A stretch of DNA of 63,733 bases, filler included, from Calcarisporiella thermophila CBS 279.70 (lineage: Eukaryota > Fungi > Calcarisporiellomycota), in assembly GCF_041956535.1 (NCBI RefSeq). It is 7 parts of 7 records of this genome, joined end to end, with 100 filler letters (N's around TTAATTAATTAA, not from the genome) between each part and the next. Parts side by side here need not be neighbours in the genome. Positions count along the whole stretch, not along the records: positions 25,249 to 42,886 come from NW_027192209.1; 6 more parts are not named here. One strand, 5' to 3'. This document shows positions 23,799 to 42,886 of this stretch, in pieces. The position numbers and the translations under genes are program-made. The notes beneath the pieces were generated by a model that was not told where the DNA came from, searched no databases, and worked only from the letters and a program-made list of their open reading frames with translations. Position 1 is the first letter of the stretch. Each line of letters starts with the position of its first letter.

Positions 23799-25313
23799 TT
23801 GCTCACACCGGTTACCGTTGGGCTAAGTATAATGTCATCCCAAGATGACCATGCTGGCGAGGTCTCTCTTCGAGCGGAGATGGAAATTCTTAAGTCTATG
23901 CTTGAGGAAATCAAGTCTAAACTGGAAGAGAACCGAGATGAGGAACGCGACGAGACGAGCAGCGAAAGCAGTGGTACTGCAGAAGATGAGCCTGACGAGC
24001 TCATATACGCTGCTAAGGCCAAACACTACCAAAGGATCCCACAATGGATGATGGACGCGTTCCCTCAAATCCTGGACCCCATTTTTTCACCCGAACACAA
24101 AATTCGGGACAGGGACCTTCGCGCAGAATGGTGGGCCCGCGCGCCAGCCATTCGCGATCAAGTTTATGACGCGCCAGCGATGCCAAGCAGCTTGCTTCAA
24201 GAGGCATCACATCAATCCAAAGCAAAAGATCGTTCACTGGCAGACTTCCAATCTCGTCTGGCCTTATCTACGAGAATAATCGACGCGCTTTTTCTTTCGG
24301 TCGCGAGATTCGTTGAAAATAATCGCGACGTGTTCCCAGATACTCTTTGCCAATATTGGCTGCAACTATATCGGGACATCACTTTTCAGATGCGAGACCA
24401 TCTCGCTACAATGTCAGAGTCAAGACTCGCAGAAATCAGACAAGCGGGTCAGTATAGCGCCAGCCTCCGCTATACAACTCCGGAGCACACCCTCATCCCC
24501 GAGGAGGTGGCCAGAGAATTCGCTAAGGAACGGAGAGCTGCATCCAAATCAAAAGTGAAGACGCGTAAGCAGCGTACAAGTTATAGAAATTCCAGGAAAC
24601 AGAGCGGAATCCGTAGCCGTTCGTAAAAACAGATTTAAACAAAATTCAAAAAAAGGATAATAAAATACTGTTGGAGAACGACCAGGCATGATCTAAGTCC
24701 GGATAGTTGTTGTGTTACGACGGTTATTTCATACTTATACAAATATGTATAAGCAAGTATCTTATCATCATTATTAGTCATCATCTCCTATTCTATCATA
24801 TATATATAGGATGTGCTTTCTCTCTTTTGAATTCTCTACTGGTGTGTGTTATTTGTGTTATCCCTTCTATCTGTCTTCTTTCCTTTTATTAATATACTCT
24901 TAATCAGTTCCAACAGGAGCCCGCAAGCTAACAAAACCAAGGCCGCTACTTAAGGACTCATTGGACATTACTTCAATATTCAATGAGCTTATGAGATGGG
25001 GACCTTCCACCAATATAAAAGCGAGAGATCTGAGGCGAAAACTGTGTTTCCTATGGGGCTTATGCCTTTTCGCTAGAGCTTCGGACTTGTATCGCATCGA
25101 CCCGGGGAGTATCATTTTGAGAGAAGATGGTCAACTGACCATCCTCTCNNNNNNNNNNNNNNNNNNNNNNNNNNNNNNNNNNNNNNNNNNNNTTAATTAA
25201 TTAANNNNNNNNNNNNNNNNNNNNNNNNNNNNNNNNNNNNNNNNNNNNTTTTATCCAATAAATCGGCCTCATCATCCTGAAGCGTGGACTGCTGACAAAG
25301 TCCGCAGTCTATT
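23799..25313 (+). mobile_element. Internally deleted DIRS-like element: gag-like ORF, tyrosine-recombinase fragment, terminal repeat across gap
   Basis: ORF 23799-24626 resembles gag-like ORF 57141-57692 (YDAPxM...D..LA); YR fragment DLRRKLCFLWGLCLFARASDL (24961-25148); repeat at 25258-25313. Confidence 0.75.
25149..25248. other. Artificial assembly linker
   Basis: N44-TTAATTAATTAA-N44. Confidence 0.97.
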
Positions 25314-25790
25314 TGAACTTATTCTATAGTGATTTTTGGTCTAACTTTCTACATTTTTAATAATATTCAAGAGTCTATAAGTGATCTATGCTGTAGCAGA
25401 ACGTGCGCTGCATATTTTTGAAATAAAATGAGAATAAAAATTAAAATAAAAAATAATGTGAAATGTTGCTAATTGTATAGGTCATTATTTAGTTCCCATG
25501 CTTGGGGGTGTGAAGGTATTTATCAACAACGTCAATCGAGTGAGTTATTTCAATATAGTTCTAAAGGTAAGAAGCAGATACGAAATATTCCGTTTTCGAG
25601 ACCATTTTCGCACTTGCAATCATGTATAAGCAATAGATAATAATATATTTAATGCATCAGAAGAGAATGGTAGAAATAATAAGAAATAAATAGCAATAGA
25701 ATACAGAGTACAAAGGGATCGTAAACTTTTGATACTAGAGTTTCTACGAAAAAAAAAAAAAACCAAATAAAAACAGACACAACAGCTAGG

Positions 25791-27989
25791 TTAGTCAATA
25801 AGAGGCGTGTTGCCATAAAGATTAGCATAACTGCCCAGTGCCCAGATGGAAAAGTGGAACTTGTAGTTCGGATAACGCATTCCGCCTGGAGGGGCGAAAA
25901 CTCCCTCTAGGCCACCCGGAAGCCACTCTCCGGTCTCCTGCTGTTGCCTCATGAGATAGATGATTCCACGCTTAATGGCTTCGGTATTGCTGCACTTAGC
26001 TGCCATCAGAGCGAGAACGGCATATGCAGTGTTAGTGACCTGGCTACCATCTGGGGATTGGACATAAGCTTTTGCCTTAATACTTTCGAGCGACTCGCCC
26101 CACCCGCCGTCCGGGTTCTGGTGTTTGAGCAAGAAGTCACATGCTTTTTTGCTTGCAGCAAAGTTGTCAGCGTATTTGCCGGCGTAGGACAGACCTTGCA
26201 GGGCAAACATAGTTGCATACGTGAAGCATACTCCCCAGCACGCGTACCAGCCGCCATTCTCTTGCTGGCTAGACAGCAAATATTTTACGCAGCGGTCGAT
26301 GCAGTGTTCAATTTCCTTCGTTCGGTAATCAGGATAGGCCTTAGAAAAAGTCGCCAGGCCCATAATAACCGAGCCAGTGCACTCAGGGTACAGGTTTTCA
26401 GTCATGACATCTTCATATAGCTCAGTAATATTAAAGTACTCCATAAGTTTGGGGGCACGGATAGGCTCGTAAGCAGAATATCCTCCACCTGGGTTCTCCA
26501 TCTCTAACACCAGATCCACTGCTTGCTCCAGACGCTCGTCGGATATCAGTTTGGGTACGATATTAGCCTGTTGCAGAAGCACGATAACCTTGACTGCCTC
26601 AATTGTAGTATCTGAGACAGCGTACGACTGATCGTGTGTGCTGAATGGCCAAGCACCTTTTGTGGGCTGCCTGTAGGTGCGTTCCATCGCACGTGGGTTC
26701 TCACGAATCTGTGTGCTCTCGATGAACTCGAGTGCCTTGCGCATGATTTCTCGGTTCTCTTCGAGGGTGGCTAACCCGGCGTCGAACGCAGCCTGTACAG
26801 TAAATGTGGTGTCCCACAGCTGGGTTCCGTTGGTGCCGGAAGAAGCCAACCCTTCGCGGCACAACCACATGGGATCGATGATACGCTCACGCATGCCCCG
26901 GATCCAGTGACTGTCGCGACCATGTGCATGGTACATCGCCAGCATGTTAGAAGCAAAGCTCACCGGAGCGATGCACAGGTAATGGGTGTTTGTTACTTCG
27001 AGCTCGATCTGGAACTGTGCTTCGCGGAGCGCGAGCTTGCGAAGGAACGGAATCTTCAGTGCTTCGTAGGTGTCTAACGCCTTAGTGAATGCGCGCCGGT
27101 ACCATGTGTCAGGTGTGTAGCGATCGGCGCTGCTGATGTTGTCCCGTTGCGCATACCAATCGATACTGTCGTACGGCTGGTCGTAGAGCTCCTTGCGTAG
27201 CGCGTTCGTCAGGTCGTTCAGCGGCATCTTGAACCGATGGCCATACAGATAGCTCATGCTGACAAAAACGTTGCGTGTGTGCACCCACCATTTGCCTGGG
27301 TTGAGTGGTGAAAAGGTTGGGGCCAACAAAGGCTCTGGGGGTAGGGGGTGCATGCCCTCCCACTCGTAGACGCCGAGTACGCATAGCCAGAACTTGCCCC
27401 ACGTTGGGATTGCACGCGCGCTGCCCAGCTCGTGCAATCTGCCTCGCGCCTTGGCCAATACCGGATGATTAGGACCCAAGCCGAGGATACGCAACATAAT
27501 GTAGTTCATAGCAGTGCCAAACACAGTAGAGTTGCTTTGGATGAACAGTCCCCACCCGCCTTCGTCTTCATTGGCCATGTTCAGCAAGTAACGGCAGAAT
27601 TCTTTTTTGATGTGCTCGTCAAAGTCAATGCCCATGATATAAGATGCAATTACGATGCCGCTAGTTACAAAGAGCGGGCCATCATCATTGCAAGCCCAGT
27701 GACCATCCTCAGCCTGCAGTCGCTTGAAGAATTCCCAGCCGTTTTTTGCTGCCTGCATGGGTTTCATTGCTTTCGGAAGTTTGAGCATGTCCAATGGCAA
27801 CCCTAGCCAATACTTCTCCAAAAAACTCTGTGGCCGCCTCTTGACCTCTTCGTCGTCGGTCAGGTATTCCCAGACGTGACGTCCATTGTAAACGTTGAGT
27901 CTCCACCGCCTGAGATCTGTACGGAACTCGCTTGCTGCTTTGTTGTCAGTAAAGCAGGTCTGCACGCTTTCAACGCTGCTATCTGTCAT
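25791..27989 (-). CDS. helA: 2,3-oxidosqualene cyclase, protostadienol synthase type (HelA/FusA/PdsA-like), intronless, 732 aa
   Basis: QW repeats (LQAEDGHW, QQENGGW, HQNPDGGWGES, QQETGEW), WWVHTR, SDTTIE catalytic motif, and C-terminal EGVFAPPGGMRYPNY, the signature that separates protostadienol synthase from lanosterol synthase (NKSCAIS). Confidence 0.93.
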   Translation of the reverse strand: MTDSSVESVQTCFTDNKAASEFRTDLRRWRLNVYNGRHVWEYLTDDEEVKRRPQSFLEKYWLGLPLDMLKLPKAMKPMQAAKNGWEFFKRLQAEDGHWACNDDGPLFVTSGIVIASYIMGIDFDEHIKKEFCRYLLNMANEDEGGWGLFIQSNSTVFGTAMNYIMLRILGLGPNHPVLAKARGRLHELGSARAIPTWGKFWLCVLGVYEWEGMHPLPPEPLLAPTFSPLNPGKWWVHTRNVFVSMSYLYGHRFKMPLNDLTNALRKELYDQPYDSIDWYAQRDNISSADRYTPDTWYRRAFTKALDTYEALKIPFLRKLALREAQFQIELEVTNTHYLCIAPVSFASNMLAMYHAHGRDSHWIRGMRERIIDPMWLCREGLASSGTNGTQLWDTTFTVQAAFDAGLATLEENREIMRKALEFIESTQIRENPRAMERTYRQPTKGAWPFSTHDQSYAVSDTTIEAVKVIVLLQQANIVPKLISDERLEQAVDLVLEMENPGGGYSAYEPIRAPKLMEYFNITELYEDVMTENLYPECTGSVIMGLATFSKAYPDYRTKEIEHCIDRCVKYLLSSQQENGGWYACWGVCFTYATMFALQGLSYAGKYADNFAASKKACDFLLKHQNPDGGWGESLESIKAKAYVQSPDGSQVTNTAYAVLALMAAKCSNTEAIKRGIIYLMRQQQETGEWLPGGLEGVFAPPGGMRYPNYKFHFSIWALGSYANLYGNTPLID

Positions 27990-29822
27990 AGTTTATTTGT
28001 GTAGGTTTATGATTGTGTGTGTAAATATATATGGCTGAGAAGCTGTATGTAATAGTATGAAAAACTATAGAGTGAACAGACAAAAGTGCATTAAAATATG
28101 ATCACTATGACAGGAGAATCAAGTGTAAGAAAGAAAACTCTATATACAACAACCGAAGTGGTAGTTAGTGATAAAGTCCCGGGGAGTTCGATAAAAGCGG
28201 TTAGGTCTTACTTCATATTGCCCTGCGGTGTTATTGGGTAGGTATCCTAAGAGAGGAAAAATCGGAGCGGTGAGCCTCCTCTTTTAGTGGCGAATCTTCA
28301 GTAAAGTGGGGCAAGTTGTACCGGAACAAAAATGGCTAAATTCAAATTCGTCGGAATCATGACTCATTGCCGAATCACCATTCAGCTGGGGCCAATTCAA
28401 TAATAAGCCCACCGTATCCGAAGATTCATTCGAAATGGGCTAGACAGTCACTAGCCCATTCTTCACGATCTCACCCTTCTTTCTCTTTGGAAGGCTAAGG
28501 TATATTACCGCAACATATCGGACTACAGAATTCCCCATGTATGTCCCTTAACGCATGTTCGTTTTCTTGCAGGCAATTGACGGATGACTCCCGAAACCAC
28601 TACATTTGAAAAGTGCATCGATGTCAGAACTTGCAAATAAAAGAGGCGGAGCTGTAAGAGGCAAAGCACAATGATTTTCTATGTATTGAGAATTATGAAA
28701 CTCTACAATAATTTGCACGTCATTTTCACTGTCGAAAATTTTGATACGCATTTGATGAGATGGAAATAAAATATCAGCCGCAACGTCACCTATGTAGTAT
28801 TTGGCAAATGCTTAAATTTCAATCATAATTTGCACTGTGTTTGACACAGAATCAAAGGCAACATGTTGCATAGAAAATTAAAAGTTGAAAGCTTCAACCA
28901 ACAAAATAAACATGGAAAGACGTGGAAACATGGTTTTTAATGGGGTTTTAGGTTAACAACACAAATATGCTTAACTCTTTCCGGCCGTTTGAAATTCGAA
29001 TTTTAAAATTTTAGAAAGAGAAGGTTGTGAAACGATTTACCTTTGAATTGTACTTCTCGGAACGCTAATGCAGAGATTCGGATGCTGGGCGGGTGTAGCG
29101 AGATCGAGATCAGGAGAGAGTTAGTGCGTGACGAGGAGGCCCAGATTAATGAATGTGAACCTTGCGTGCCTGGTATTAGCTCAGAAAACTTATTCCATAC
29201 CAGAATCGTCTCCTTCCTATAGTCATCCTAACCCAATTGTGTGACTGCGTTGCTTTTTTCCTCAATCGGTTACCAAGTCAACTGAGTTGTCTCTAGAGGT
29301 TGTAGGTAGGAAGCTGCCACGAGTCATTATTTTTCTTCCAGAGCACGAATTCTAACTAATATGTTTGTATCATATCCGTTTCTTGCTTCAATTGAAACTT
29401 GGGCAAGAAAAATTTAATTTGCAACCCAAAATATTGGTTACATTCATATATAGTACAATTAGGTAATCTGTGGTATTTCTACGTTACTTTCAGTCCAAGT
29501 TTTTACATATTCTGTCATATTGCCTTTTATCTACGTATTCCTTTGTCTTGCCCGGGTTTTTAATTGTTTTCCAATTCAATTGGATTTTAAGCATTGATTC
29601 TCAACAAGAGACAAGAATGTAAACTTTTAGCATTAAAAATTAGAAATATTGGCACCAAGTTCATACAGCCCAATTAATATAACATCATTATGAATTTACA
29701 TTTTTGCCAGTTTTATAATGAATGAAATTTTTGAGGAAAAAGAAGTAATATGTTATTAGCTTAGTAATCGCAATTGTAAGTGATAAAGGAAGAAAAACAA
29801 AAAAAGTGTTGAACAAATATCT

Positions 29823-31403
29823 TTAAACCTCGGTACGTTTAGTGATAATCATACGACAATCACGCTCTGGTTTGGCGGGGAATGAAGCAATGAAGCACTT
29901 CGCGGGCAACAACTTAGGAAGTCCATCTTCGTCAACATTGTGTGGACCGAAGATACTATCCTTGGGGAGAGAGATGTTATAGTCCTTGAGTATGTTTGCT
30001 ACGATAGCTAGCATCTCAACCCACGCGAGGTTGCGACCAATGCAGAAGCGATGTCCAAAAGAGAAGGTGAATAGATTGCGCTTGGCCACATCGTTGCCCA
30101 AGAATCGAGTTGGATCGAAGCGGCGAGGGTTTTCCCAGATGTCTTTGTGCATGTTGGGGGAGCGCAAGTTTACGTAAATTTCCACGCCCGGAGGAATATA
30201 GTGGCCCTGGATCGTTATACCTTTCGAGTAGGAAATACGGGGTGTCAATCCAGAAGTAGTAGGAGACTGACGTAGTGCCTCGTAGACACAGGCTTCGACG
30301 AATGGCAACTGGTTACGGACATCGGAATAGGTGATGAGGTGGTCGAGGGGGAATTGGCTGCGAACTTCCTCGACAGCGCGGCGAAGATGCTCGGGGTAGA
30401 GCAGCAACAGATGAAGGGTATACATTATTGCAGAGGAGGTTGTCTCGCTTCCGGCAAGCATCATCATGATACTCTCAGACTGCACTTCATGAGGAGTCAT
30501 CTTGATTTTGGACTCGGGGTCTTCAGCATCGATAAAAGCTTGCAACATGTCGATTGGCTTTTCGTATTTCTCCTCGGCCAAGAGCTTCTTGCGCATATCA
30601 ACAGATTCCTTGCTATAAACGGCCAAATCCTGGTATAATCTCTTCCAAGGTTGGATGATGACGGAGAAAGGCAACACCGCGAGAAGAAGGAGGACGATAG
30701 GGTTGTCCAAGAGTGTCATGGTTGCGCTTGACCACTTGATGACAGAAGTGCTGCCTTTAAACAGAGAATTGAATTTCCGTCCGAACGCTAATGCACTCAT
30801 GATATCGAAAGTGGCAAGCTGGGTATCAATTCGGTAGTTGACCTCGGTGGGTTTGCCGTCATTCTTCGCAATCAGCTCATCCCACTTGTATTTGATAGCC
30901 TGGATGCCATGACGAAGAATCAGTGGCTCCATCTTGCTCAAGAAGGTGTAGTTGAAGTAAGGGCCGATTTGTCGTCTCCTGCGATTAACAAGTTCGGGTT
31001 CTTTGAGCGATACAATGTTAGGGGTACCATAATCTTCGAAAATATCGAAAAAGTCGGCCTTTCTAAAGTCCTGGGAGCTAAGGACAGCACGGATATCAGA
31101 TGGGTTACTGATACAAACACCATTCGGCTTGAATACGTAGACATCACCGTAGGTTTTGCAGTCGGCTTGAACAATGTTATCGACGTTGCCAGAGAAATTG
31201 GCCAGGTTACCACGTTTTTCAGTGATACGAGCGAGAAGGGGGCCAGGGATATTGCGTAGAGGTGAGAAAAATAGTGCGTAGATGAGACGCCAGGCCACCA
31301 GAAGGCAAAACAAAGTAGCCAGGGTACGAGCGTACCCAAACTCATGGAGGGCAGCTTGAACTTGGGCAGTCAGGTTCAGCCAGTTGATGCTGAAAGCTAG
31401 CAT
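29823..31403 (-). CDS. Cytochrome P450, HelB/CYP5081-like paralog 1, intronless, 526 aa
   Basis: Start MLAFSINW matches paralogs 2 and 3; LAGSETTS, EALR, FSFGHRFCIG heme motif; family assignment from recall and context. Confidence 0.9.
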   Translation of the reverse strand: MLAFSINWLNLTAQVQAALHEFGYARTLATLFCLLVAWRLIYALFFSPLRNIPGPLLARITEKRGNLANFSGNVDNIVQADCKTYGDVYVFKPNGVCISNPSDIRAVLSSQDFRKADFFDIFEDYGTPNIVSLKEPELVNRRRRQIGPYFNYTFLSKMEPLILRHGIQAIKYKWDELIAKNDGKPTEVNYRIDTQLATFDIMSALAFGRKFNSLFKGSTSVIKWSSATMTLLDNPIVLLLLAVLPFSVIIQPWKRLYQDLAVYSKESVDMRKKLLAEEKYEKPIDMLQAFIDAEDPESKIKMTPHEVQSESIMMMLAGSETTSSAIMYTLHLLLLYPEHLRRAVEEVRSQFPLDHLITYSDVRNQLPFVEACVYEALRQSPTTSGLTPRISYSKGITIQGHYIPPGVEIYVNLRSPNMHKDIWENPRRFDPTRFLGNDVAKRNLFTFSFGHRFCIGRNLAWVEMLAIVANILKDYNISLPKDSIFGPHNVDEDGLPKLLPAKCFIASFPAKPERDCRMIITKRTEV

Positions 31404-31455
31404 TGTCAGAAGTGTGAAAAAGCTCCTAAAGAACTGGATGGCTGCTTTGTAGTAG
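31404..31455 (-). promoter_or_regulatory. Conserved 5' leader shared by the three cluster P450s (copy 1)
   Basis: ctactacaaagcagccatccagttctttaggagctttttcacacttctgaca-ATG; homologous to 34781-34832 and 35698-35750. Confidence 0.75.
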
Positions 31456-31800
31456 GAAAAAAAGTAAGTGTTTTTTAAGAAAGGGAAGAAAAAACAGAAC
31501 GAGAACGTAAGGAGTGTGAGTGTACCTCGGGATCTGCAGAGGCTTCGCATCGGAGAAAGAGGATGGATCGAGAACTTAGTAGTGTAACATGGCAAATGGA
31601 TCACCAGATAGAGTTGATGATTCATCGGTTCCAGAATCATACTCCAGTAAGGTGCCGAAAATTCGTAACTAACCCTATGCGTAAGTGACTCTCCGCATCC
31701 TTATTTCTAACTCAACTCTTAAGTCCTTGCGCCACTGACATTCCTATCTCGCTAAATTTTTTTAGCTAAAACCAGCTGTTACCAGCTCACACATTTAACT

Positions 31801-32580
31801 ATGTCAAACTTTACCAACGTAGCCATTGTCACTGGCGCTGCCCAAGGTGTGGGTCTTTGCATCGCAAAATCATTGGCCAAACGTGGTTATAAAGTGGTCA
31901 TCAGCGATGTTGAGATAGAGAAAGGCCAACAGGCTGCTGCCGAGGTTAACCAAGAGCACGGGGAGGGAACCGCCACATTTGTTCGCTGTGACCTGACCAG
32001 CACTAGCGACATCGATAACCTGCTTGCCACCGCCATCGAGAAGTTTGGCAGCTACTCTGTGCTTGTCAACAATGCTGGTTTTCTGCGCGCACCATTCATG
32101 GCCATCTCGGCCAAGGACATCGAAGCCACCATTGCTGTCAACCTCACTGCACCCATTTACGCGACACGGCAAGCCATCAGATATTGGAATGAAAACCCTC
32201 ATGTCAACGGCCAGGTAGTCAGCGTCACTTCGTCGTCTTCATTCAAAACTTATGCCAGTATCGCTGCCTACGGAGCAGCCAAGGCTGGTGCAGCACAGTT
32301 TACCTTCGCTTCTCGCGCGTTTGGGCCCAAGATCCGTATTAATGCCGTCGCACCCACAGCCATCGCCACCAATTTTGATAAGAACAAGATGCGAGTGGAA
32401 ACCGATAAAACCGGTCCTGGCTACGTACCAGAGGAAGAGATGCGTGCCATGGGCTTGAAGAGGTTGTCAGTCGAGGATGTTACTAATACGGTTCTCCGTT
32501 GCATCGACGACGACTCTTTGTACGGAAACGTCCTTTATATTGATGCTGTCGAGGGGCTTAAGATCAGGTCAGAATTTTAG
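31801..32580 (+). CDS. Short-chain dehydrogenase/reductase, HelC-like, intronless, 259 aa
   Basis: TGAAQGVG, CDLT, LVNNAG, TSSSS, YGAAK, INAVAP; divergent from P450 paralog 1. Confidence 0.9.
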   Translation: MSNFTNVAIVTGAAQGVGLCIAKSLAKRGYKVVISDVEIEKGQQAAAEVNQEHGEGTATFVRCDLTSTSDIDNLLATAIEKFGSYSVLVNNAGFLRAPFMAISAKDIEATIAVNLTAPIYATRQAIRYWNENPHVNGQVVSVTSSSSFKTYASIAAYGAAKAGAAQFTFASRAFGPKIRINAVAPTAIATNFDKNKMRVETDKTGPGYVPEEEMRAMGLKRLSVEDVTNTVLRCIDDDSLYGNVLYIDAVEGLKIRSEF

Positions 32581-33199
32581 TGCGTCTTCAGAGTCGAGTT
32601 AGGAGTTCAGATTAAGCTGGATTAACGCACGCAGCCAATCCCTTTTTTAAATAACCCTTTATTTTAGTAGAGATGGGTGAGCCAAGACTGTAGAAAAACT
32701 CAGTATAATAGAAACCTAGAAAATTATATCTGTGTAATTTGAAATCAAAACAAGCGATGCTACCAATACTTTTAAAGTAAAAATGTAAAATGCAGCATTT
32801 TGCGGTAACCAATTTCAATAACAAATATGATTCTCGTATTCATAGTAAAATTTTCAGAGGATCGCTTATACATAGCTGGATGCTGATGTAGGAAACTGGA
32901 CTCTCGGAAACTCTCCCCCTTGACTCCCAGTGATGCACATTGCACACTCCTGCCTCTTTTAACCATCATTTCCCCAATTCTTTATCTACTTTTTTAGCAA
33001 TTAAATTTTTCATTTTGATATCTACATCAACGATTTCATGTGCACAGTGTTATGTTAAACCGCACTTCAATGCGCGTGTATTTGACATTATATAAATAAA
33101 AAGGTAGGGTGGTGATATATTAACAATGGTGTGAGAAAGCTCAGTAAAATGTCAAAGAAATACGGTCGTGTGGCAGAAAGGAGAAGAACCCGAGAAAAA

Positions 33200-34780
33200 T
33201 TATGCCGCAATGCGCTTGGAGATTATCAGTCGGCAGTCGCGATCGGGATGTGTCGGTGCGAAGACGATGTGGCATTTAGAGGGCATCAGCTTCGGGACTC
33301 CATTCCCGTCAACATTGTGTGGGCCGAAAATGTTGTCCTCGGGAAGCGATATGTCATAGTCCTTGAGTAAGTTTGCGGCAATAGTCAGCATCTCAACCCA
33401 TGCGAGGTTGCGACCAAGACAAATGCGAGGCCCGTAAGAGAAGGCGAATACGTTGCGCTTAGCCTCTTCATTATTCATGAAGCGATCAGGGTTGAAGCGG
33501 TGAGGTTCATCCCAAAGATCCTTGCGAACGTTGATCGCGCACAGGTTAAAGGCAATTTCAACCCCTGGCGGAATGTAGTGGCCTTGTATGGTGATTCCTT
33601 TAGTGTATGAGATTCTGGGCATGAATCCAGATGTGATAGGTGAATAGCGTAGTACTTCGTATATGAATGCTTCAAGGTATGGAAGCTGGGTGCGACACTC
33701 GTTGTAGGTGATGAGGTGGTCGAGCGGGAATTGACTGCGCACTTCTTCGACAGCACGGCGAAGGTATTGTGGGTACAGAGTTAGCAGGTGGAGTATCCAG
33801 GTAAGAGAAGTGGAAGTCGTCTCGCTACCAGCAAGTTGCATGCCAACACTCTCGGCCTGCACCTCGAGAGGTGTCATCTTGATCTTGGACTCGGGGTCTT
33901 CAGCATCGATAAAAGCTTGTAGTAGATCTGACGGCTTACCTTCAGTGCTCTGTGCCAGGAATTCCTTGCGTAGAGCAACCGACTCTTTGCCAAATTCAAC
34001 AAAATCGCTATGCATCTTCAACCAAGGCCGGATGAGTAGAGAAAATGGGAATGAGGTGAGAAGGTTAAAATTTATTCGGACTCCCACGTATACCGCGGTT
34101 GCAGCAATCCAGTTGACTATTGTAGAGTTATTGTTGGCCAGCGAGTTGAATTCCCGACCGAAAGCCAGCGCGCTCATAATATCGAAAGTAGCAAGTTGCA
34201 GGTCATGGCGGTAGTTGATCTCGATGGGCTTTCCACCGTTCTCCGCAATTAACCCATCCCATTTGGCTTTGATCGCCTGGATGCCGTTGCGAAGAACCAG
34301 CGGCTCCATTTTGGATAGATACCCGTGATTGAAGTATGGGCCGATCAGGCGTTTTCTCCGACTGGCAAGTGACGGCTCGCTAAATGTCACTATATTGGCC
34401 ATGTAGGGATCGTTGAGGTCCCGATATATATCAATCTTTCTGAATTCTGGCGAACCAAGGACAGCCCTGATATCAGATGGGTTGGTGATGCAGACAGTGT
34501 TTGGTTTAGAGACGTAGATGTCGCCATATTTCTCGAAGTCTGCAATTGCCGCCTTAATTACCCTGGTAGGCGCACGATTGTATATGGCACGCTTATCAGT
34601 GATACGGGAGAGTGGCGGGCCTGGGATATTGTGCAGACGCGACAAAAAGAATGCGTAGGTTAATTTCCATGCCATCTGCAGACCCAACAAGGTTGCTAGA
34701 AAACGGATATACCCAAACTCATGGATGAATGAGTGAGCCTGAGTAAACAAGGCCGGCCAGTTAATGTTGAAAGCTGGCAT
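33200..34780 (-). CDS. Cytochrome P450, HelB/CYP5081-like paralog 2, intronless, 526 aa
   Basis: MPAFNINW start; LAGSETTS, EVLR, PDRF, FSYGPRICLG heme motif. Confidence 0.92.
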   Translation of the reverse strand: MPAFNINWPALFTQAHSFIHEFGYIRFLATLLGLQMAWKLTYAFFLSRLHNIPGPPLSRITDKRAIYNRAPTRVIKAAIADFEKYGDIYVSKPNTVCITNPSDIRAVLGSPEFRKIDIYRDLNDPYMANIVTFSEPSLASRRKRLIGPYFNHGYLSKMEPLVLRNGIQAIKAKWDGLIAENGGKPIEINYRHDLQLATFDIMSALAFGREFNSLANNNSTIVNWIAATAVYVGVRINFNLLTSFPFSLLIRPWLKMHSDFVEFGKESVALRKEFLAQSTEGKPSDLLQAFIDAEDPESKIKMTPLEVQAESVGMQLAGSETTSTSLTWILHLLTLYPQYLRRAVEEVRSQFPLDHLITYNECRTQLPYLEAFIYEVLRYSPITSGFMPRISYTKGITIQGHYIPPGVEIAFNLCAINVRKDLWDEPHRFNPDRFMNNEEAKRNVFAFSYGPRICLGRNLAWVEMLTIAANLLKDYDISLPEDNIFGPHNVDGNGVPKLMPSKCHIVFAPTHPDRDCRLIISKRIAA

Positions 34781-34832
34781 TGTTAGAAGCAAGAAAAAGT
34801 GCTTTAAGAACTCGATGGCTACTTTGTAGTAG
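34781..34832 (-). promoter_or_regulatory. Conserved P450 5' leader (copy 2)
   Basis: ctactacaaagtagccatcgagttcttaaagcactttttcttgcttctaaca-ATG. Confidence 0.75.
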
Positions 34833-35697
34833 CAAATAAAAGTTAGAGGGAAACAAGGAGAAATGAAAATAGGTGGTAAGTCCTAGCCATGTTAGTCATA
34901 ATTCCGCCCGCCTGCACACAATTTGTATCGAAGTTTGCCACGCAGTGTGAAGGGTGATTCATAATTCTCCCAGTTTGTCTGATGTGAATCCGCAAAATTC
35001 TAGTAGTGCACATGTCAAATCCAACTACAAGCGGGTAATGATGGAATTAATTAGACCATATAGTGTAACGTTGATACCGTGAATGGCGATTAACTTAACA
35101 GGGTCTTCGAAGGACAAAGCCACACGTCTAATTCGTCTGATCTATATCCACAAAGTTCGTGAACACAGGGCAAACCTAGTTTCAAGCGGAGGACTATTTT
35201 TGATCCAGTTTTACCTCGGATTAATATTGATTCATATATCTTAATTCCTCGCTCTCTTCAGAGCAGAGCGGGACAATACCAGAGGCCTCAGAATAAAGAA
35301 AAAAAAAATAACCTCTCAGCAAGCTATCTACGCACTAGCTTCAGGATTAGTTTGGACTCTCTCTCAGTGTGCTCTTTATTACATATACAAGAACCTCGCT
35401 TGTCCATAGACGAAGAGGCCTTCTCAGTAAAAGAATTCACGCAAATCCTATCTTTGCTTCCCCGTTATCTATTCTGTCTAATACGATTTAGTGGAAACAA
35501 TTTCGGACAAACAAGCGCAAATCCCGACCTTGGGAGGATTTACGATTATTTTGTGTAAGATTGCGTTGGGCGTTGCATATTCGTCAACCGCTACAGTCTT
35601 GCGGGGCTAAGGGAATGACTAATCTCCTATGCTTCTCCTTGCAGCTTTGCAGCGCCTTCCGACTTTTTTTTTCTTCCGCCCTTTTTCCTTTCTTTTT

Positions 35698-35750
35698 CTA
35701 CTACAAAGCAACCATCCCGTTCTTTTTGGCGCTTCTTCACATTTCTGGCG
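35698..35750 (+). promoter_or_regulatory. Conserved P450 5' leader (copy 3)
   Basis: ctactacaaagcaaccatcccgttctttttggcgcttcttcacatttctggcg-ATG; 1 nt longer than the other copies, so not an in-frame extension. Confidence 0.75.
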
Positions 35751-37334
35751 ATGCCAGCTTTCAGCATCAACTGGTTGGGCCAGCTTGCCCAGGTTCACGC
35801 CGTTCTCCACGAGCTTGGATATATCCGTTTGCTTGCAATATTGTTGTTTGGAGTGCAGGTGGCTTGGAAATTAACCTACGCATTCTTTTTATCGCCACTC
35901 CGCAATATCCCAGGCCCATTTCTTTCTCGCGTTACAGCTAGGCGCAGCGAATTCAAGGCTCTGTCTGGGAATGGAGAGAAAGCAACACAGCAAGACTACG
36001 AAAAGTACGGAGACATCTACGTGTACAAGCCAAATGTTATCTGCATCTGCAACCCGAAGGACATTCGGGCCGTGCTGAGCTCCAATCAATTCAGAAAAAC
36101 TGACTTGTATAAGATTTTCGAGTATCTGGGCATACCAAACGTGGCGACATTCACAGACCCAGTGCTTGCGAACCGCCGGAGGCGGCAGATCCACCCATAC
36201 TTCAACTTCACGTACCTAGGCAAAATGGAATCACTGATTCTCCGCCACGGTATCGAAGCGATTAAGACGAGGTGGGATGGGCTGATTGCGAAGAACGGCG
36301 GAAAGCCGATCGAGGTCAACTACCGCCACGACACGCAGCTCGCCACCTTCGACATCATCGGCGCATTAGTGTTTGGGCGTGAGTTCAATGCACTCGCAAC
36401 CAACAACATGTCTTATATCAATTGGGTTTCAGGTACTTTCTTCTATTTGATGCTCCGCAACAACTTCCCCTTGCTTGCCGTGTATCCCTTCTCGCTCCTT
36501 GTCAGGTCCATGAAAAAGTCGCATGATGAACTGGCGGAGTTCAGCAAGGAGTCGGTTGCCATGCGCAAGGAGCTGCTGGCTAAAGGGGTCGACGAGAAAC
36601 CCGCTGACCTACTGCAGGCGTTGATCGATGCAGAGGACCCTGAGTCCAAGTACAGGATGTCGCCTATCGAAGTGCAGACGGAGAGCGTTGGCATGCTACT
36701 TGGCGGGAGTGAGACGTCCTCCTCCGCAATTTCGTGGACGGTTCACTTTTTGCTATTGCACCCCGAGCACCTTCGCCGCGCCGTCGAGGAGGTGCGCAGC
36801 CAATTCGCGCCTGGTCACACCGTCACATTCAACGAGACTCGCGCCCACCTGCCATACCTCGAGGCCTGCATCTACGAAACTCTGCGCTATATTCCGGCAG
36901 GCACCGCCTCTTTCCCGCGAATCTCTCATTCTACCGGCATCACTATCCAGGGCCACTACATCCCGCCGGGCGTTGAGATCGCCGTCAACAAGTGGGCTGC
37001 CCACATCCACAAGGACTTCTGGGACGACCCGCTCACCTTCAACCCTGTTCGCTTCCTAGACAACGATGAGGCCAAGCGCAACATGCTTTCCTTCTCGTAT
37101 GGACAGCGCTTCTGCATCGGGCGCAACCTCGCATGGGTGGAGATGCTGCCCATCCTGGCCAACATGCTCAAGGACTACGACATTTCTCTTCCAGAGGGTA
37201 GCCTCTTCGGCCCCCACAACCTCGACGAGCATGGCCGTCCAAAACTTATGCCCACGAAGCCTTCTGTGTTCACCATGCCTGCCAACCCCGAGCGCGACTG
37301 CCGCATGATCGTCACCAATCGCTCCGAGGTATAA
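35751..37334 (+). CDS. Cytochrome P450, HelB/CYP5081-like paralog 3, intronless, 527 aa
   Basis: MPAFSINW start; LGGSETSS, ETLR, PVRF, FSYGQRFCIG heme motif. Confidence 0.92.
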   Translation: MPAFSINWLGQLAQVHAVLHELGYIRLLAILLFGVQVAWKLTYAFFLSPLRNIPGPFLSRVTARRSEFKALSGNGEKATQQDYEKYGDIYVYKPNVICICNPKDIRAVLSSNQFRKTDLYKIFEYLGIPNVATFTDPVLANRRRRQIHPYFNFTYLGKMESLILRHGIEAIKTRWDGLIAKNGGKPIEVNYRHDTQLATFDIIGALVFGREFNALATNNMSYINWVSGTFFYLMLRNNFPLLAVYPFSLLVRSMKKSHDELAEFSKESVAMRKELLAKGVDEKPADLLQALIDAEDPESKYRMSPIEVQTESVGMLLGGSETSSSAISWTVHFLLLHPEHLRRAVEEVRSQFAPGHTVTFNETRAHLPYLEACIYETLRYIPAGTASFPRISHSTGITIQGHYIPPGVEIAVNKWAAHIHKDFWDDPLTFNPVRFLDNDEAKRNMLSFSYGQRFCIGRNLAWVEMLPILANMLKDYDISLPEGSLFGPHNLDEHGRPKLMPTKPSVFTMPANPERDCRMIVTNRSEV

Positions 37335-38382
37335 ACCCACTTTGCGCTTCTTTTTTAATCTTCCTGTCTCGCCTTCTTGCTCTTAGACACTCATTTCCAA
37401 AAATTCTTCCTCGAGTCTGTACCATTTAAAGCACCACTCAATAATCCAGTACTAATAAAAGTTGAAGACACCAGATTTATATACTCAGCAAGCAGATTAT
37501 ACTTACAGCACCTTCTCTAATTTGTCGTCATAATTGCAATAAACACACATATTAAACCCTTTAGTGCCCATATCGATTGTAACATCAAAGTTCCTCAAAG
37601 TGCGCTAATAATTTTGGCATCGTAATTTTCAAAATACTACAATTAGATTTGATACGAAAAAGGATGAATATTTCATTATTTTACTTATTCAATCTAAGAG
37701 TGAATCTAACTGATAACCAGAGATATCGTAAGAGCTACAGAAGAGAAACGGATCATAAGCTACAGGACTATTACAGTCATGCTGAGGGGATTGGCTGCCT
37801 GCTTAGCAGAAAAGATTTTTTTATTATGAATGAGTGAGTATTTAACTGATCAAGACATTAATAGCCATTGTTCATCTCTTCCAGGATACTCCTTTTTGTT
37901 TGTAAGTATCCCAATGACCTGGCTTTGGTCTCCCTTCTTCGGATTTAGCTCTGCTCATATCTTTATTAGCTCCTTCCTTATATAGTAATTTCTATCTTAT
38001 TTTTGACTTAATGTCGACATGAACTCGGGAAGTATTTCCTATGCTTTTTTCCACACACACGTGGGTACCTCGCTCACACTCCTGAGATTCTATGAAAAAT
38101 CCACTGATTTCGAGTCCACCACTCTTTGACGTGGCTTATGCGACTTGATTTTCATGTTAAGAGCTAGCAGGAGCACAGTTGAACAAAGGAGAAATAAAAT
38201 AGGGGAACTGTGAGGTTGAATTTTTCTTTCCTATTTTTTCTTTCTCTCTTCATTCCTCCTTTCTTACTTCATCCCAACGCGTGAATATATATAGCATCAC
38301 CTTTTGCGGGAATACGTTTTTCCTAAATAGCCTGCTGGCCCAATCTCTCATATAACAGTTCATTACTGTTCTGACAGATGCA

Positions 38383-39852
38383 ATGGAGGCCTTCCAGCAT
38401 GGTGTAACAAGCAAAGCCTATCCTCTTTCGCCCTTGGACATTATCCCTAACCACCTGTATATCACGAATGTGTATTTTATTGAAAACACACTAAGCGATG
38501 GTGACGCCTTCATGCCTAGCGACGTTTTAAGGGAGTCATTCTACGGCGCACTTCAACAATATCCTATCCTCGCTGGCTATCTTCGTCGGAAGAGCTGGAG
38601 TAAAATGGAAATCGAAGTGGACAAGGACGATCTGAACATGCCCGAGTACGTTGAATCCGCCAGCGACGTTCACTTCAAGTCCCTCAGAGATCACCAGTTT
38701 CACAGGGACGCATGGCCGCGGGGGGTTAACATTGTTGACCCACGGGCGATACCCGACAGCAGCGGCTCTCCTAAGCTTCTCCGTGCGCATGTTTATCGGC
38801 TGGCAGAAAACAGTGGTGTCGTGATTGTCGTCCGCGCGTCGCACAGTGTTTTCGATGCCAAGGGGTACGTCTCGTTCATCAACGCCTGGGCCCAACTATG
38901 TCGCGAGAGTCTCGACCCAAACTTGCCGAGAACTCCTGTGAAGCCGCTCATCGATCGTAGCGTTCTCTATGAGCAATTACCTGCGGACGTAAGGCCGACA
39001 AGCAGCCCAGCAACGAGTGCCCGCGCGTGGCTCACTCCCATCCTGTCAATTTTTGTCCGGCTGGCGCTGAACCTGTATGTCATGGTTGCCCCCAAGCAGG
39101 CGGCCCCGGATTTCATTGAAAGCCATTTGTTCCGAATTTCCGGGGACTCGCTTCGCCGCTTGCGTGACAAGATCAGTGCGCTTGAGCCTAATAGCCCGCA
39201 TGTCTCCAACAACGACATAATCACGGCGCTCTTCACCATGGCGTTCGCCCAGAGCACCGAACAGTTGGCGGTACAAGCAAGTGCCAATGCTGGCTTCTTT
39301 TCAAAAGCGGTCAAGTACAGCAAGGATTTGATGGGCTCTGGCGAGAAGGGCATAAGCGCGATTGTTCCGTGTGATTTCCGCCACCGCATAGGAGTGCCAG
39401 AAAACTACACAGGAAGCTGCGCAATGGGTCTCTACGTCACTGCACCCAAAGAACTTTTGCTTAAGCCGATCACCCCAGAGTCCCTGGCCAAAGTTGCTGT
39501 GATTTCACGCAATACGATAGACCAGGTTGACAAAAAGCGCATTGAGCAGTTTATTAGTCGGGCTCTAAAGGTCATCAACCTGGTTGGGCACAAAGCAAAT
39601 GTGCTTTACTCCATGCTTGTGTGCCAGGCCTTTTCTAACCAGTCTCGGCTCAGATTCTACGACGCCGACTTTGGTCATGGCCAGCCTGCAAAAGTGGTGC
39701 CCATGGCATACTCCAACACCGTTGCCGTCGTCTTTCCTCCCGCACCACCAAGCAGTGATGACGTGGAAGTGTTCCTCACACTGCGCCCGAATGTAATGGC
39801 TAATTTGCTCAAGAAACAGGATCTTCAATCTTTTGCGACCATCGTTTACTAG
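38383..39852 (+). CDS. CoA-dependent acyltransferase (transferase/BAHD-like, HelD2/FusD-like), intronless, 489 aa
   Basis: LSPLD N-terminus, YPILAG, HSVFD (HxxxD), DFGHG (DFGWG-like). Confidence 0.9.
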   Translation: MEAFQHGVTSKAYPLSPLDIIPNHLYITNVYFIENTLSDGDAFMPSDVLRESFYGALQQYPILAGYLRRKSWSKMEIEVDKDDLNMPEYVESASDVHFKSLRDHQFHRDAWPRGVNIVDPRAIPDSSGSPKLLRAHVYRLAENSGVVIVVRASHSVFDAKGYVSFINAWAQLCRESLDPNLPRTPVKPLIDRSVLYEQLPADVRPTSSPATSARAWLTPILSIFVRLALNLYVMVAPKQAAPDFIESHLFRISGDSLRRLRDKISALEPNSPHVSNNDIITALFTMAFAQSTEQLAVQASANAGFFSKAVKYSKDLMGSGEKGISAIVPCDFRHRIGVPENYTGSCAMGLYVTAPKELLLKPITPESLAKVAVISRNTIDQVDKKRIEQFISRALKVINLVGHKANVLYSMLVCQAFSNQSRLRFYDADFGHGQPAKVVPMAYSNTVAVVFPPAPPSSDDVEVFLTLRPNVMANLLKKQDLQSFATIVY

Positions 39853-41204
39853 CTTCATCTGTATCTAGTATCTTCGGGCTGCAGTAAACGTTGGTTGCAG
39901 CTACCACATTTTTTCCCTCTCCCTTTTCTCTCTGATTTTTTGCGAGCCGAGTTTACACCTGTAAGCACCTTCTTTCTTCTCTTTTCATTCTTGAAATCAA
40001 CATGAAGTTAATCAGTGTCTTTAACCAGCCCTCAGATTCAGAGACAAAAAGGGTAACCTAGTTACTTTTATATCTTTTTCATAGACCTTCCCAGTTAATA
40101 CTCTGTTCTGAATAGTACCTCGATCTCACTTAACTATCAAAAATGGATATCACCTATTTTCCATTTAAAATATCGATTTCCTTATGTATTCAGCTCTTGA
40201 TGTTCAATTTCTCGCGATGAGGTGCAAAGGTCGTAGAAACTTGAGCAACATAGCGAATGCGATTGTAACGTACAACTATAATGTTCAGTTCGGTTCACCT
40301 CTCAGATTGATCGATGCATTTGTCAAAAGAACAATTTCTTTCTTAAATTCTTGTTCAAAGATGTGACTCAAAGAGGCTATCTTCTGCAGAGAGATAAAGA
40401 GGGAAAATTATTTGTCTCTTTTTTTACAAGTATTTTCAGGTTTATGCAAGGAGAGTAAAACTGTAACAAATAGTTCCAGAAACAATATAAAGCAAAGTTA
40501 AAGAGAAAATATTTAGTCGGGAAATAATTTATATTAATATGCAAATACAAACTTTCAAAAGATCTATTGTACACAGGTAGTATATTTTTCTATAAGATTC
40601 ATACAGGAACCCAGGTACTATATACAGTTTCGTCATGGTGATAAAAGTAATACGGCACGCCGATATTTAACTCTTCTTTTGAAACTATAATTCTTCGTTT
40701 TTCATTATCACAATTCTCTTCGCGAAAATTCAGTAATACATATCGAGCCATAAAATAATAAGATTGGATAAAAGAAATAAAAAAGAGAACAATGAGCATT
40801 GTAATGAGGCAAGAGTTGCATAAATATAACAGCTGTTTATATATTTTAGAACTTAGAATATCCAGGGTAAAAACTACAACAAGGCTTCTGTAAATATTGC
40901 TCAATTATATATGCATAAAATAATACAATAATATGTAAAATTTTCACGTTTGAAAAATTGAAGACTGTTTTTATGGATTAATATAACGGCTCGGCAGGTA
41001 AGCAGAATAATCTTAGTATAAAAAATAGGAGAAGAACAATAAGATGAAACAGATGTGTTTATTTAAAAAGGAAAATAATATGACTCTGGCATGTGTCTAG
41101 AAGTTCCAAGATCAATTGCAGAATTTCTTAATATAATTTTCATACTACACTGAGATTACATTAACACTTGATTCTCCCTTTGACAAGCAACATCATCTAA
41201 GTTG

Positions 41205-42392
41205 TTAACTCTTTTTGGCATATAACATACATCCATCGACCACAATGGTTGCTCCATTTGTGTATGCGCCAGCACGGGATGCTAGATAAATACAGGTTCC
41301 GGCTATATCCTCAGATTCACCAAAGCGACCAGCTGGAATTGCACTTTTAAGTTTATTCAAGAAGGCATCGTTGTCTTCCGAGACCAAGTCTTTTGTTAAC
41401 TCAGATCGGAAATATCCTGGCGCGATTGAATTCACGGTGATATGGCGATAGCTAAGTAGAGGGGCAAGCGCTTCTGTCATCCGGTGGAGAGCGGCTTTGG
41501 ATATATTGTATACTACATAACTCGGCATTGGTGTGTTGATCATTGCAGCAACAGAACCTATCATAATTACACGACTCGGATCTGCTTGGGTGCATTTAGC
41601 GGAAAGCAGCGGAATAAGTCTGTCAATGAAAAGAAATAAAATGTAGTAAAAAGTACTTCAGTATACTTTTTAAGGTTTTAGGTCGCATAGGGTAAAGCTT
41701 TGAGGATTCGAATCCATGAAGTCCAATATCAAAATTCCTACTTACGCCTTTGTTAAAAAATAAGGAGCTTTCAAGTTGATGTCAAAGAGATCATCCCAAC
41801 TCTCCTCGGTATAAGTGTCGAAATCTTGACTATTAGTTACTCCCGCATTGTTCACTAAAACATCGAGGCGATTCTCCTGTTTCATCAATTCTTCTACTAG
41901 CCTATTTATTCCATCTAGATTCTTCAAATCAGCAGGAATGCTAATGCATTGACCTGGCCCTTGTTCGTTTAATCTAGCAGCGACCTTGAGCAAGATATTT
42001 AGAAATGAGGTATTGAAAATTATTGCAATAATTCGTAAGCTATGAATAAAAGCATAGACAAGCAGCTTATTGTATTACCTGATTGCATACATCGGTTGAC
42101 CTGCTTGCAATGTAGACCTTAGCACCATTTGAAATGAAGCCCTAAACGCACAATGTCGGAGAAAATTATTATTCCTGAGTCAAAAAAAAAATTCATCTTG
42201 ATAAAATCCAAGGGAATTTGAGGAAAAATTCTTACATTGGCAATCATTTCTCCAATGCTAAACATGATTAGTGAATTGAATCTAATTAGCCTGAGCCCAC
42301 GATAGAATTGGAGCAAATTTTAGTTACCCTCGACTTCCACCAGTGACAAGCACCACTTTTCCTTTAACGCTAAACAACTTCGATATATCCAT
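41205..42392 (-). CDS. Classical SDR (3-oxoacyl reductase-like), 5 exons, host-type composition
   Basis: MDISKLFSVKGKVVLVTGGSRGIG, ADL, LVNNAG, GSVA, YNISK, VNSIAPG, IPAGRFG; in-frame GT-AG splicing. Confidence 0.88.
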
Positions 42393-42886
42393 TATGAAAT
42401 TGCAAAAAAAAAATACTGCCTTGAGGACTGTGAAATTATTAAGTGGGAGAGTCTTTGCGATTTTCGGGATATTATATACCAAATACTTGCTAAGATTTAG
42501 AATGGGAAGACTAGGCAAAGGTATATTGAACCTTTATACTAAACACCAGTGTCGAAATTCGAATAATGCCTATTATTTAAAATAATACAGTATTAAGAAA
42601 TTTAGATAAGAGTAAGATTATGAAATTCCGTAGAGATTGAAAATTCCTTACAATTCGTTAAATACAAAAAAAAAACATTAAGAATAATATAAGAAAACAA
42701 CCTAATTAGCAAGCGTAATTGTGATGTTATCGGAGTTGAACAGAATTCGCTTTCCAGTACTATTGCTACCAAAGAAACTGAAATATAAGATGGTATGGCA
42801 GTATCCGAATTTCAGCTTAATTGAAGTCACTTTTTCATTGGGAACAGGTGTATGACGTGTCTGTGGCTGAATACCCTTTTAAATAT

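Follow-up and report, generated by a model that had tools for sequence, protein, structure and literature searches.

Is the oxidosqualene cyclase (OSC) encoded in a stretch of DNA from the thermophilic fungus Calcarisporiella thermophila CBS 279.70 a sterol enzyme of primary metabolism, or does it belong to an antibiotic pathway, and where does it come from? The gene occupies positions 25791-27989 on the minus strand of the window, by which we mean the whole analysed stretch of 63,733 nucleotides. Our analysis indicates that this open reading frame (ORF) is very probably a protostadienol-synthase-type OSC, which heads a fusidane (helvolic-acid-like) gene cluster foreign to C. thermophila.

The fusidanes, i.e., fusidic acid, helvolic acid as well as cephalosporin P1, are to our knowledge the only antibiotics targeting EF-G, and their gene clusters have been described from Pezizomycotina. 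For basal fungi, a survey reported that HelA-like OSCs are present and that tailoring genes are either lacking or not clustered (PMC9602595). C. thermophila belongs to the phylum Calcarisporiellomycota, outside the Dikarya (NCBI taxonomy), and was placed as sister to the remaining Mucoromycotina in a phylogenomic study (PMC10079182); the genome of strain CBS 279.70 was released with PMC11393059.

The cyclase and its C-terminal motif

25791..27989, minus strand: oxidosqualene cyclase, helA orthologue (putative protosta-17(20)Z,24-dien-3beta-ol synthase), from the ORF, Pfam, identity to HelA, alignment to 1W6K, motifs and trees
25875..25898, minus strand: codons of F698-A-P-P-G-G-M-R705, the C-terminal block that determines product outcome in protostadienol synthase, from translation, alignment and motif comparison

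The ORF encodes 732 residues and is intronless with no internal stop. Both Pfam domains of the family, PF13249 (SQHop_cyclase_N) and PF13243 (SQHop_cyclase_C), were found with E values of 1e-47 to 1e-50, and residues 20-727 aligned to residues 16-725 of the human lanosterol synthase 1W6K (phmmer, E 7e-174). The sequence-only reading of this DNA had placed an F-APPGGMR motif at 25875-25898; the reverse complement indeed gives these codons, and the C-terminal stretch of the minus-strand translation reads GLEGVFAPPGGMRYPNYKFHF as noted there. F698-APPGGMR705 stands opposite F696-NKSCAIS of 1W6K (human context GVF-NKSCAIS-YTSYRN), and the catalytic Asp is kept as D460 in VSDTTIE (codon 26610-26612). 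The window OSC shares the two-domain alpha/alpha-barrel family and the catalytic Asp with human lanosterol synthase and fungal ERG7, but differs from them in having F-APPGGMR for F-NKSCAIS, DTTIE for DCTAE and a clustered, dispensable-looking context. The same reading had stated that swapping APPGGMR for NKSCAIS in the A. fumigatus enzyme converts its product to lanosterol, which calls for one small correction: the swap mutant of Kimura et al. 2010 reportedly gave lanosterol and parkeol in roughly equal parts. For the role of the APPGGMR block, the relevant passage of PMC8227516 points to Kimura et al. 2010 as its source (ref. 26).

The best named relative of the OSC is A. fumigatus HelA, with 70% identity over the full length. 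Among the best 120 homologues, F-A[PSCAN]PGGMR was confined to the HelA-containing clade, so the APPGGMR match is not a matter of chance. Within the same set, the exact string GVFAPPGGMRYPNY was common to the window OSC, the Aspergillus group including HelA and the Patellaria group only; the remaining ascomycete members of the HelA clade carried GIFA[SCAN]PGGMR, the ERG7-type proteins F-N[KHR][NST][CV]xI[SA], and ordinary fungal ERG7 GVFN[KHR]N[CV]xI[SA]. We further defined 23 signature columns, each with one residue on which 20 ascomycete HelA-clade proteins agree and another that is common to 30 ERG7 proteins, the window OSC not being used in choosing them. The window OSC has the HelA-clade state in 19 of these columns and the ERG7 state in three, and these three ancestral ERG7 states have been lost from all sampled protostadienol synthases (PDS) of Pezizomycotina. 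Neither the N-[KR]-x-C-x-I-S block nor DCTAE is present in it. The form DTT(A/I)E, instead of the canonical DCTAE, is common to the HelA clade and to the ERG7 of Kickxellomycotina (Coemansia, Smittium) and, as a derived residue that both share, fits the origin of the HelA clade suggested by the trees described below. As a side observation, a sister group of ascomycete OSCs within the HelA clade (P0032, P0034-P0036, P0041, P0043-P0047, P0052-P0054) reads GIY-[TV]PP[CGN]GYR-YPLY instead of GxF-AxPGGMR.

Tailoring genes around the cyclase

The contig that carries the OSC comprises window positions 25249-42886 (17,638 bp), with runs of N at both ends, and corresponds to bases 640,840-658,477 of scaffold MU987582.1 (672,666 bp; GCA_041956535.1). 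Six more genes were found on it, namely three cytochrome P450s, a short-chain dehydrogenase (SDR), a BAHD-type acyltransferase and an intron-bearing classical SDR, and a fourth P450 of the same type lies on the neighbouring contig:

29823..31403, minus strand: cytochrome P450, helB1 orthologue, 526 aa from the Met of MLAFSINW; Pfam p450, 68.7% identity to HelB1
31801..32580, plus strand: short-chain dehydrogenase, helC orthologue, 259 aa; Pfam adh_short, 66% to HelC and 76% to the SDR of the Patellaria cluster
33200..34780, minus strand: cytochrome P450, helB2 orthologue, 526 aa; Pfam, 65.4% to HelB2
35751..37334, plus strand: cytochrome P450, helB3 orthologue, 527 aa; Pfam, 56.5% to HelB3
38383..39852, plus strand: BAHD-type acyltransferase, helD2 orthologue, 489 aa; Pfam Transferase, HxxxD motif, 48% to HelD2 vs 31% to HelD1
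41205..42392, minus strand: classical SDR interrupted by two introns, gene called at 267 aa; ORF pieces, Pfam on exon 3
L001 18473-20053, neighbouring contig across a 4,472-N gap: cytochrome P450, helB4 orthologue; 68% to HelB4

Orthology was assigned by best hits against the complete hel cluster of A. fumigatus, and the hits were one-to-one for helB1, helC, helB2, helB3, helB4 and helD2. In trees, the acyltransferase was placed in the helD2 clade and the helB3-like P450 formed a clade with HelB3 (support 100/100). None of the seven core ORFs is broken or contains an intron, and the heme-Cys, TGxxxGxG/YxxxK and HxxxD motifs are visible in their translations. Five of the six conserved early genes (helA, helB1, helB2, helB4, helC and helD2) lie on the OSC contig, and the sixth, the helB4 orthologue, lies on the adjacent one. 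The Calcarisporiella cluster is an exception to the statement of PMC9602595 on basal fungi. The mechanical ORF of the helB1-like P450 extends to 31640, 79 codons upstream of the likely start at MLAFSINW, and the called gene has 526 aa; the public model of the helC-like SDR is a spliced one of 310 aa, and the plain ORF of 259 codons matches HelC end to end.

Whether the intron-bearing SDR at 41205-42392 belongs to the cluster is doubtful. Its exons were compared one by one and never joined for searching; it showed ~28-30% identity to HelC over 80 aa and a low GC content at third codon positions (GC3, 38-39%). As a candidate for a FusC1-type 3-ketoreductase it was ruled out, being of another SDR class with no match in the exon-by-exon comparison.

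The last ~50 kb of MU987582.1 (623.5-672.7 kb) are gene-poor and contain five N gaps. In this 49-kb span, of which ~13 kb in total is N, no helE and no helD1 orthologue or second acyltransferase was found, and tblastx/tblastn gave no match to the fusB1- and fusC1-like genes of Nannizzia. No telomere repeat was found at the scaffold end, and within the 17.6-kb contig no tRNA or transposon-like repeats were found flanking the genes.

A separate sterol cyclase elsewhere in the genome

MU987582.1 48,226-50,976 (L013 8001-10751): host ERG7-type cyclase VTP21DRAFT_3810 (P0257), on the same scaffold ~590 kb from the cluster

The sequence-only reading had taken the window OSC for a cyclase of secondary metabolism rather than the housekeeping ERG7, and had proposed to search the genome for a separate one. 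With Bifiguratus ERG7 as the query we found a second OSC, P0257, of 705 aa and 45% identity to the window OSC, which reads GVFNRNCMISYPNY (F-NRNCMIS) and VSDCTAE. The window OSC therefore does not stand alone in the genome, the case in which the sequence-only reading would have failed. Its gene contains introns (2,751 bp for 705 codons) and is flanked by housekeeping genes (threonine synthase, SET, Suv3 helicase, aminotransferase and Nramp). P0257 has the ERG7 state in 21 of the 23 signature columns and the HelA-clade state in one, and it groups with Mucoromycota (Glomeromycotina) ERG7 with a Shimodaira-Hasegawa-like approximate likelihood ratio test (SH-aLRT) support of 97. Four features of an ERG7 (F-N-[KR]-x-C-x-I-S, DCTAE, a housekeeping setting and a tree position with the host lineage) are all found in P0257, and none of them in the window OSC. 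With 70% identity to HelA, the PDS state in 19 of 23 columns, hel tailoring orthologues adjoining it and a separate ERG7 present, the assignment of the window OSC to secondary metabolism is borne out, and in the genome annotation it should not carry the label lanosterol synthase. The terminal branch of P0257 was rather long (0.57), and its grouping with the ERG7 of Glomeromycotina rather than that of Mucoromycotina came from a quick tree.

Phylogenetic origin of the cyclase and the P450s

The placement of the OSC was examined in two trees of 68 and 42 sequences. In both trees, the window OSC was sister, on a short branch, to all 34 sampled HelA-clade proteins of Pezizomycotina, the joint clade having an SH-aLRT support of 100, and the Pezizomycotina proteins formed a clade without the window OSC (SH-aLRT 100 and 99). 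The two together were sister to Coemansia ERG7, nested in the ERG7 of Kickxellomycotina and far from both Mucoromycota ERG7 and ascomycete ERG7. The approximately unbiased (AU) test rejected a grouping of the window OSC with the Aspergillus group (p 0.0004) as well as with Patellaria/jgi6 (p 6e-5), both groupings having been chosen after tree inspection. Because the OSC is nested in Kickxellomycotina ERG7 beside Coemansia, and not with Mucoromycota, we conclude from these trees that the cluster is xenologous in Calcarisporiella and that its OSC descends from a Kickxellomycotina-type ERG7; the host has retained an ERG7 of its own. Li et al. 2020 reportedly proposed that the OSC arose in Zoopagomycota, with which our trees agree. 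That fusidane clusters are patchily spread and have moved horizontally between classes of fungi is ascribed to Li et al. 2020 in the pertinent passages of PMC9602595 and PMC9729932.

Coemansia (Kickxellales) ERG7 is the closest non-PDS relative of the window OSC, with 62-64% identity and DTTAE, in the sister clade. Unlike the window OSC, it reads GVFNHSC[AG]IR and has the HelA-clade state in 2 and the ERG7 state in 15 of the 23 columns, and it sits among housekeeping genes, P450, SDR and acyltransferase genes being absent from its neighbourhood.

The P450s tell a similar story. A maximum likelihood tree of 20 CYP5081-type P450s from six clusters resolved four orthogroups, each with one Calcarisporiella gene (support 100/99-100); two intron-bearing P450s beside the Patellaria and Nannizzia clusters, with 25-30% identity to the CYP5081 set, were left out. 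In the helB1, helB2 and helB4 orthogroups, which have five ascomycete members each, the Calcarisporiella copy branches first, with a short terminal branch of 0.10-0.13, and its basal position in the helB1 orthogroup is supported at 100/100. The helB3 orthogroup consists of the Calcarisporiella and A. fumigatus copies only, from which no branching order can be read. Removal of the N-terminal 75 residues left the topology unchanged. Within Calcarisporiella, the four paralogues have 60-64% identity among themselves vs 42-50% in A. fumigatus, Patellaria and Metarhizium and 43-50% in A. fumigatus taken singly, and the N-terminal extension MP(A/S)FSINW...HE(F/L)GYIR of the Calcarisporiella P450s is still recognisable in Patellaria. 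We conclude that the Calcarisporiella cluster probably diverged before the sampled ascomycete clusters diversified.

One tract of DNA shared by two of the P450 genes bears on how far their placement can be trusted:

35450..35900, plus strand: promoter and 5' leader of the helB3-like gene with its first ~150 nt, 95-96% identical to L001 18170-18622 of the helB4-like gene

The tract takes in 300 nt or more of upstream DNA together with the first ~150 coding nt, and the remainder of the two genes is 54-77% identical; this pattern marks the tract as a recent gene conversion. Outside the first ~150 nt, DNA identity among the P450 paralogues is 50-83%, so conversion cannot be the main cause of their basal placement, and since the OSC is single-copy, conversion cannot affect the OSC placement. 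A leader of ~60 nt around CTACTACAAAGCAGCCATC is common to all four P450 genes and is missing upstream of the OSC, SDR and acyltransferase genes; it was considered as a cluster-wide regulatory element and ruled out, being present only upstream of the four P450 paralogues.

Alternative explanations

A recent acquisition from a sampled lineage of Pezizomycotina, either the A. fumigatus group or a Patellaria-like Dothideomycete, would make the basal position an artefact, which we consider improbable. Such a donor would account for the top identities to A. fumigatus and Patellaria (OSC 70%, SDR 76%, helB4-like P450 69% and acyltransferase 58%) and for the finding of the exact APPGGMR in only the Aspergillus and Patellaria groups besides the window OSC; the acyltransferase tree leaves the order of Calcarisporiella, HelD2 and Patellaria unresolved, and gene conversion at the 5' ends of the four P450 paralogues could draw them to the paralogue node. 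However, the AU tests rejected both groupings, named post hoc as they were, and the OSC, which has no close paralogue, is likewise sister to all (SH-aLRT 99-100) and keeps the three ERG7 states lost in all sampled Pezizomycotina PDS. The P450 topology also stays when the N-terminal 75 residues are removed, with the paralogues at 50-83% DNA identity past the first ~150 nt. That the contig is contamination or mis-scaffolded DNA of another fungus is very unlikely, even though it has N gaps on both sides and the clearly native-type genes (the nitrate transporter and ERG7) all lie on other contigs of the scaffold. No sampled organism has the cluster sequences, the best protein identity being ~70-76%; the intergenic GC content of 31-37% is that of the rest of the intergenic DNA of the scaffold; an intron-bearing AT-rich SDR gene lies on the same contig; the two cluster contigs share the 95-96% conversion tract, and host-type DNA is joined to each of them in the scaffold; and the scaffold is present in two deposited samples. 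Hardly credible in our view is a role of the enzyme in primary metabolism, be it as a lanosterol synthase or as a bifunctional sterol cyclase. It is a member of the OSC family and descends from a Kickxellomycotina ERG7-like ancestor, but it has neither the N-K/R-x-C-x-I-S block nor DCTAE, its signature columns are mostly in the PDS state, tailoring genes surround it in a gene-poor scaffold end, and a canonical ERG7 is encoded elsewhere.

Several observations weigh against the reading of the ORF as the head of a foreign fusidane cluster. The helB3 orthology has one partner sequence, with 56.5% identity to HelB3 vs 54.5% to HelB1. The helB4 orthologue is tied to the main contig only via the 4,472-N scaffold gap, and the right side of the main contig ends in a 1,889-N gap, so that it is the public scaffolding that establishes linkage, and helD1 or helE could lie within a gap. 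The GC3 of the cluster (54-70%) brackets that of the adjacent native-type nitrate transporter (67%). This transporter, on the adjacent contig, carries the NCBI name Calcarisporiella thermophila VTP21DRAFT_4073, and its nearest relatives are proteins of Mortierellomycotina, Glomeromycotina and Mucoromycotina (44-50% identity). Base composition was dropped as a sign of foreign origin, since native-type neighbours cover the same GC3 range; the GC content of the intergenic DNA inside the cluster is likewise similar to that of other intergenic DNA of the scaffold.

Comparison with known clusters and the predicted pathway

The helvolic acid cluster of A. fumigatus (helA, helB1-B4, helC, helD1, helD2 and helE; PMC5696383) has seven orthologues in Calcarisporiella, with 48-70% identity. 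In both, the core is intronless and the helB1-type P450 adjoins the OSC in the same orientation, but the clusters differ in part in the order and orientation of their genes, the Calcarisporiella host is non-Dikarya, and of the late genes the helB3 orthologue is present whereas helD1 and helE were not found in the sequenced 49-kb span. The clusters of A. fumigatus, Patellaria and Xylariaceae lie within ~4 kb of a contig end, and the Calcarisporiella cluster is also near a contig end. The cluster for fusidic acid in Acremonium fusidioides and the clusters resembling it in Nannizzia gypsea and Patellaria atrata (PMC6437595) have six early genes in common with Calcarisporiella, i.e., the OSC, three CYP5081-type P450s, the helC-type SDR and the helD2-type acyltransferase. 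Fusidic acid-type clusters carry fusB1-type (11alpha-hydroxylase) and fusC1-type (3-ketoreductase, PF01370/3beta-hydroxysteroid dehydrogenase (3beta-HSD)) genes and no helB3, whereas Calcarisporiella has helB3 and no homologue of fusB1 or fusC1 was found in the window.

In Patellaria atrata (L009 4090-20984) and Nannizzia gypsea (L011 5368-21056) we observed the six early genes together with a gene of the epimerase/3beta-HSD family and an unrelated intron-bearing P450, and from this gene content the two clusters look fusidic-acid-type. The extra genes of Nannizzia are the closest homologues of fusC1 and fusB1 (PMC6437595). The public model of the Patellaria helB4-like P450 (L009 4090-6032, 517 aa, with introns) seems to be mis-called, and an unbroken match of 527 residues fits.

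The roles of the hel and fus genes were described by Lv et al. 2017 (PMC5696383) and Cao et al. 2018 (PMC6437595), and the pathway proposed here was inferred by orthology with the A. fumigatus reconstitution in the former and from the latter. If the genes are expressed and the enzymes active as predicted, D460 would protonate (3S)-2,3-oxidosqualene, which would fold in the chair-boat-chair form and give the protosteryl C-20 cation, and the F698-APPGGMR pocket would then favour immediate deprotonation to protosta-17(20)Z,24-dien-3beta-ol over the route to lanosterol by hydride and methyl shifts. The HelB1-type P450 would oxidise the C-4beta methyl group, the HelB2-type P450 would hydroxylate C-16beta, and the HelD2-type transferase would acetylate the 16-hydroxyl as a 16-O-acetyltransferase. 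The HelB4-type P450 is predicted to oxidise C-21 to the acid, and the HelC-type SDR to combine 3-OH oxidation with decarboxylative C-4 demethylation, giving a 3-keto 29-nor fusidane core. The HelB3-type P450, which acts in C-6/C-7 oxidation in A. fumigatus, would add the 6-OH and the 7-oxo group. The end product may be a 6-hydroxy-7-oxo fusidane like 6-deacetyl-1,2-dihydrohelvolic acid or its 3-hydroxy (3-reduced) form, a prediction that follows from the lack of helD1 and helE in the sequenced DNA and that we hold with somewhat less than even confidence, because the gaps may hide genes and the function of helB3 is taken from one orthologue.

Implications for the fusidane pathway

The enzyme and the pathway are of a known kind; what is of interest is the unexpected host, a thermophilic non-Dikarya fungus, and the early-branching, little-diverged cluster genes. 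A literature search (by accession and for Calcarisporiella with helvolic acid) found no paper describing a Calcarisporiella fusidane cluster. A complete-looking, clustered early pathway together with helB3 in Calcarisporiella widens the host range of the pathway across phyla. The cluster also provides an outgroup by which the four P450 duplications, and likewise the recruitment of helC and helD2, are dated to a time before the cluster radiated in ascomycetes, and it offers thermophile enzymes, and possibly a helvolic-acid congener, for combinatorial biosynthesis.

A more far-reaching scenario, which is possible but on the whole rather unlikely, is that the Calcarisporiella cluster represents an early branch which has evolved slowly and which split before the pathway diversified in Pezizomycotina, the seven genes having come together in an early-diverging lineage related to Kickxellales, or close to it, and the whole cluster having been passed from there to Calcarisporiella and to the ascomycetes. 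If this scenario of an early offshoot is true, Calcarisporiella would hold the closest surviving record of the ancestral gene set, and fusidane enzymes, possibly with a new fusidane, would become available from a thermophile.

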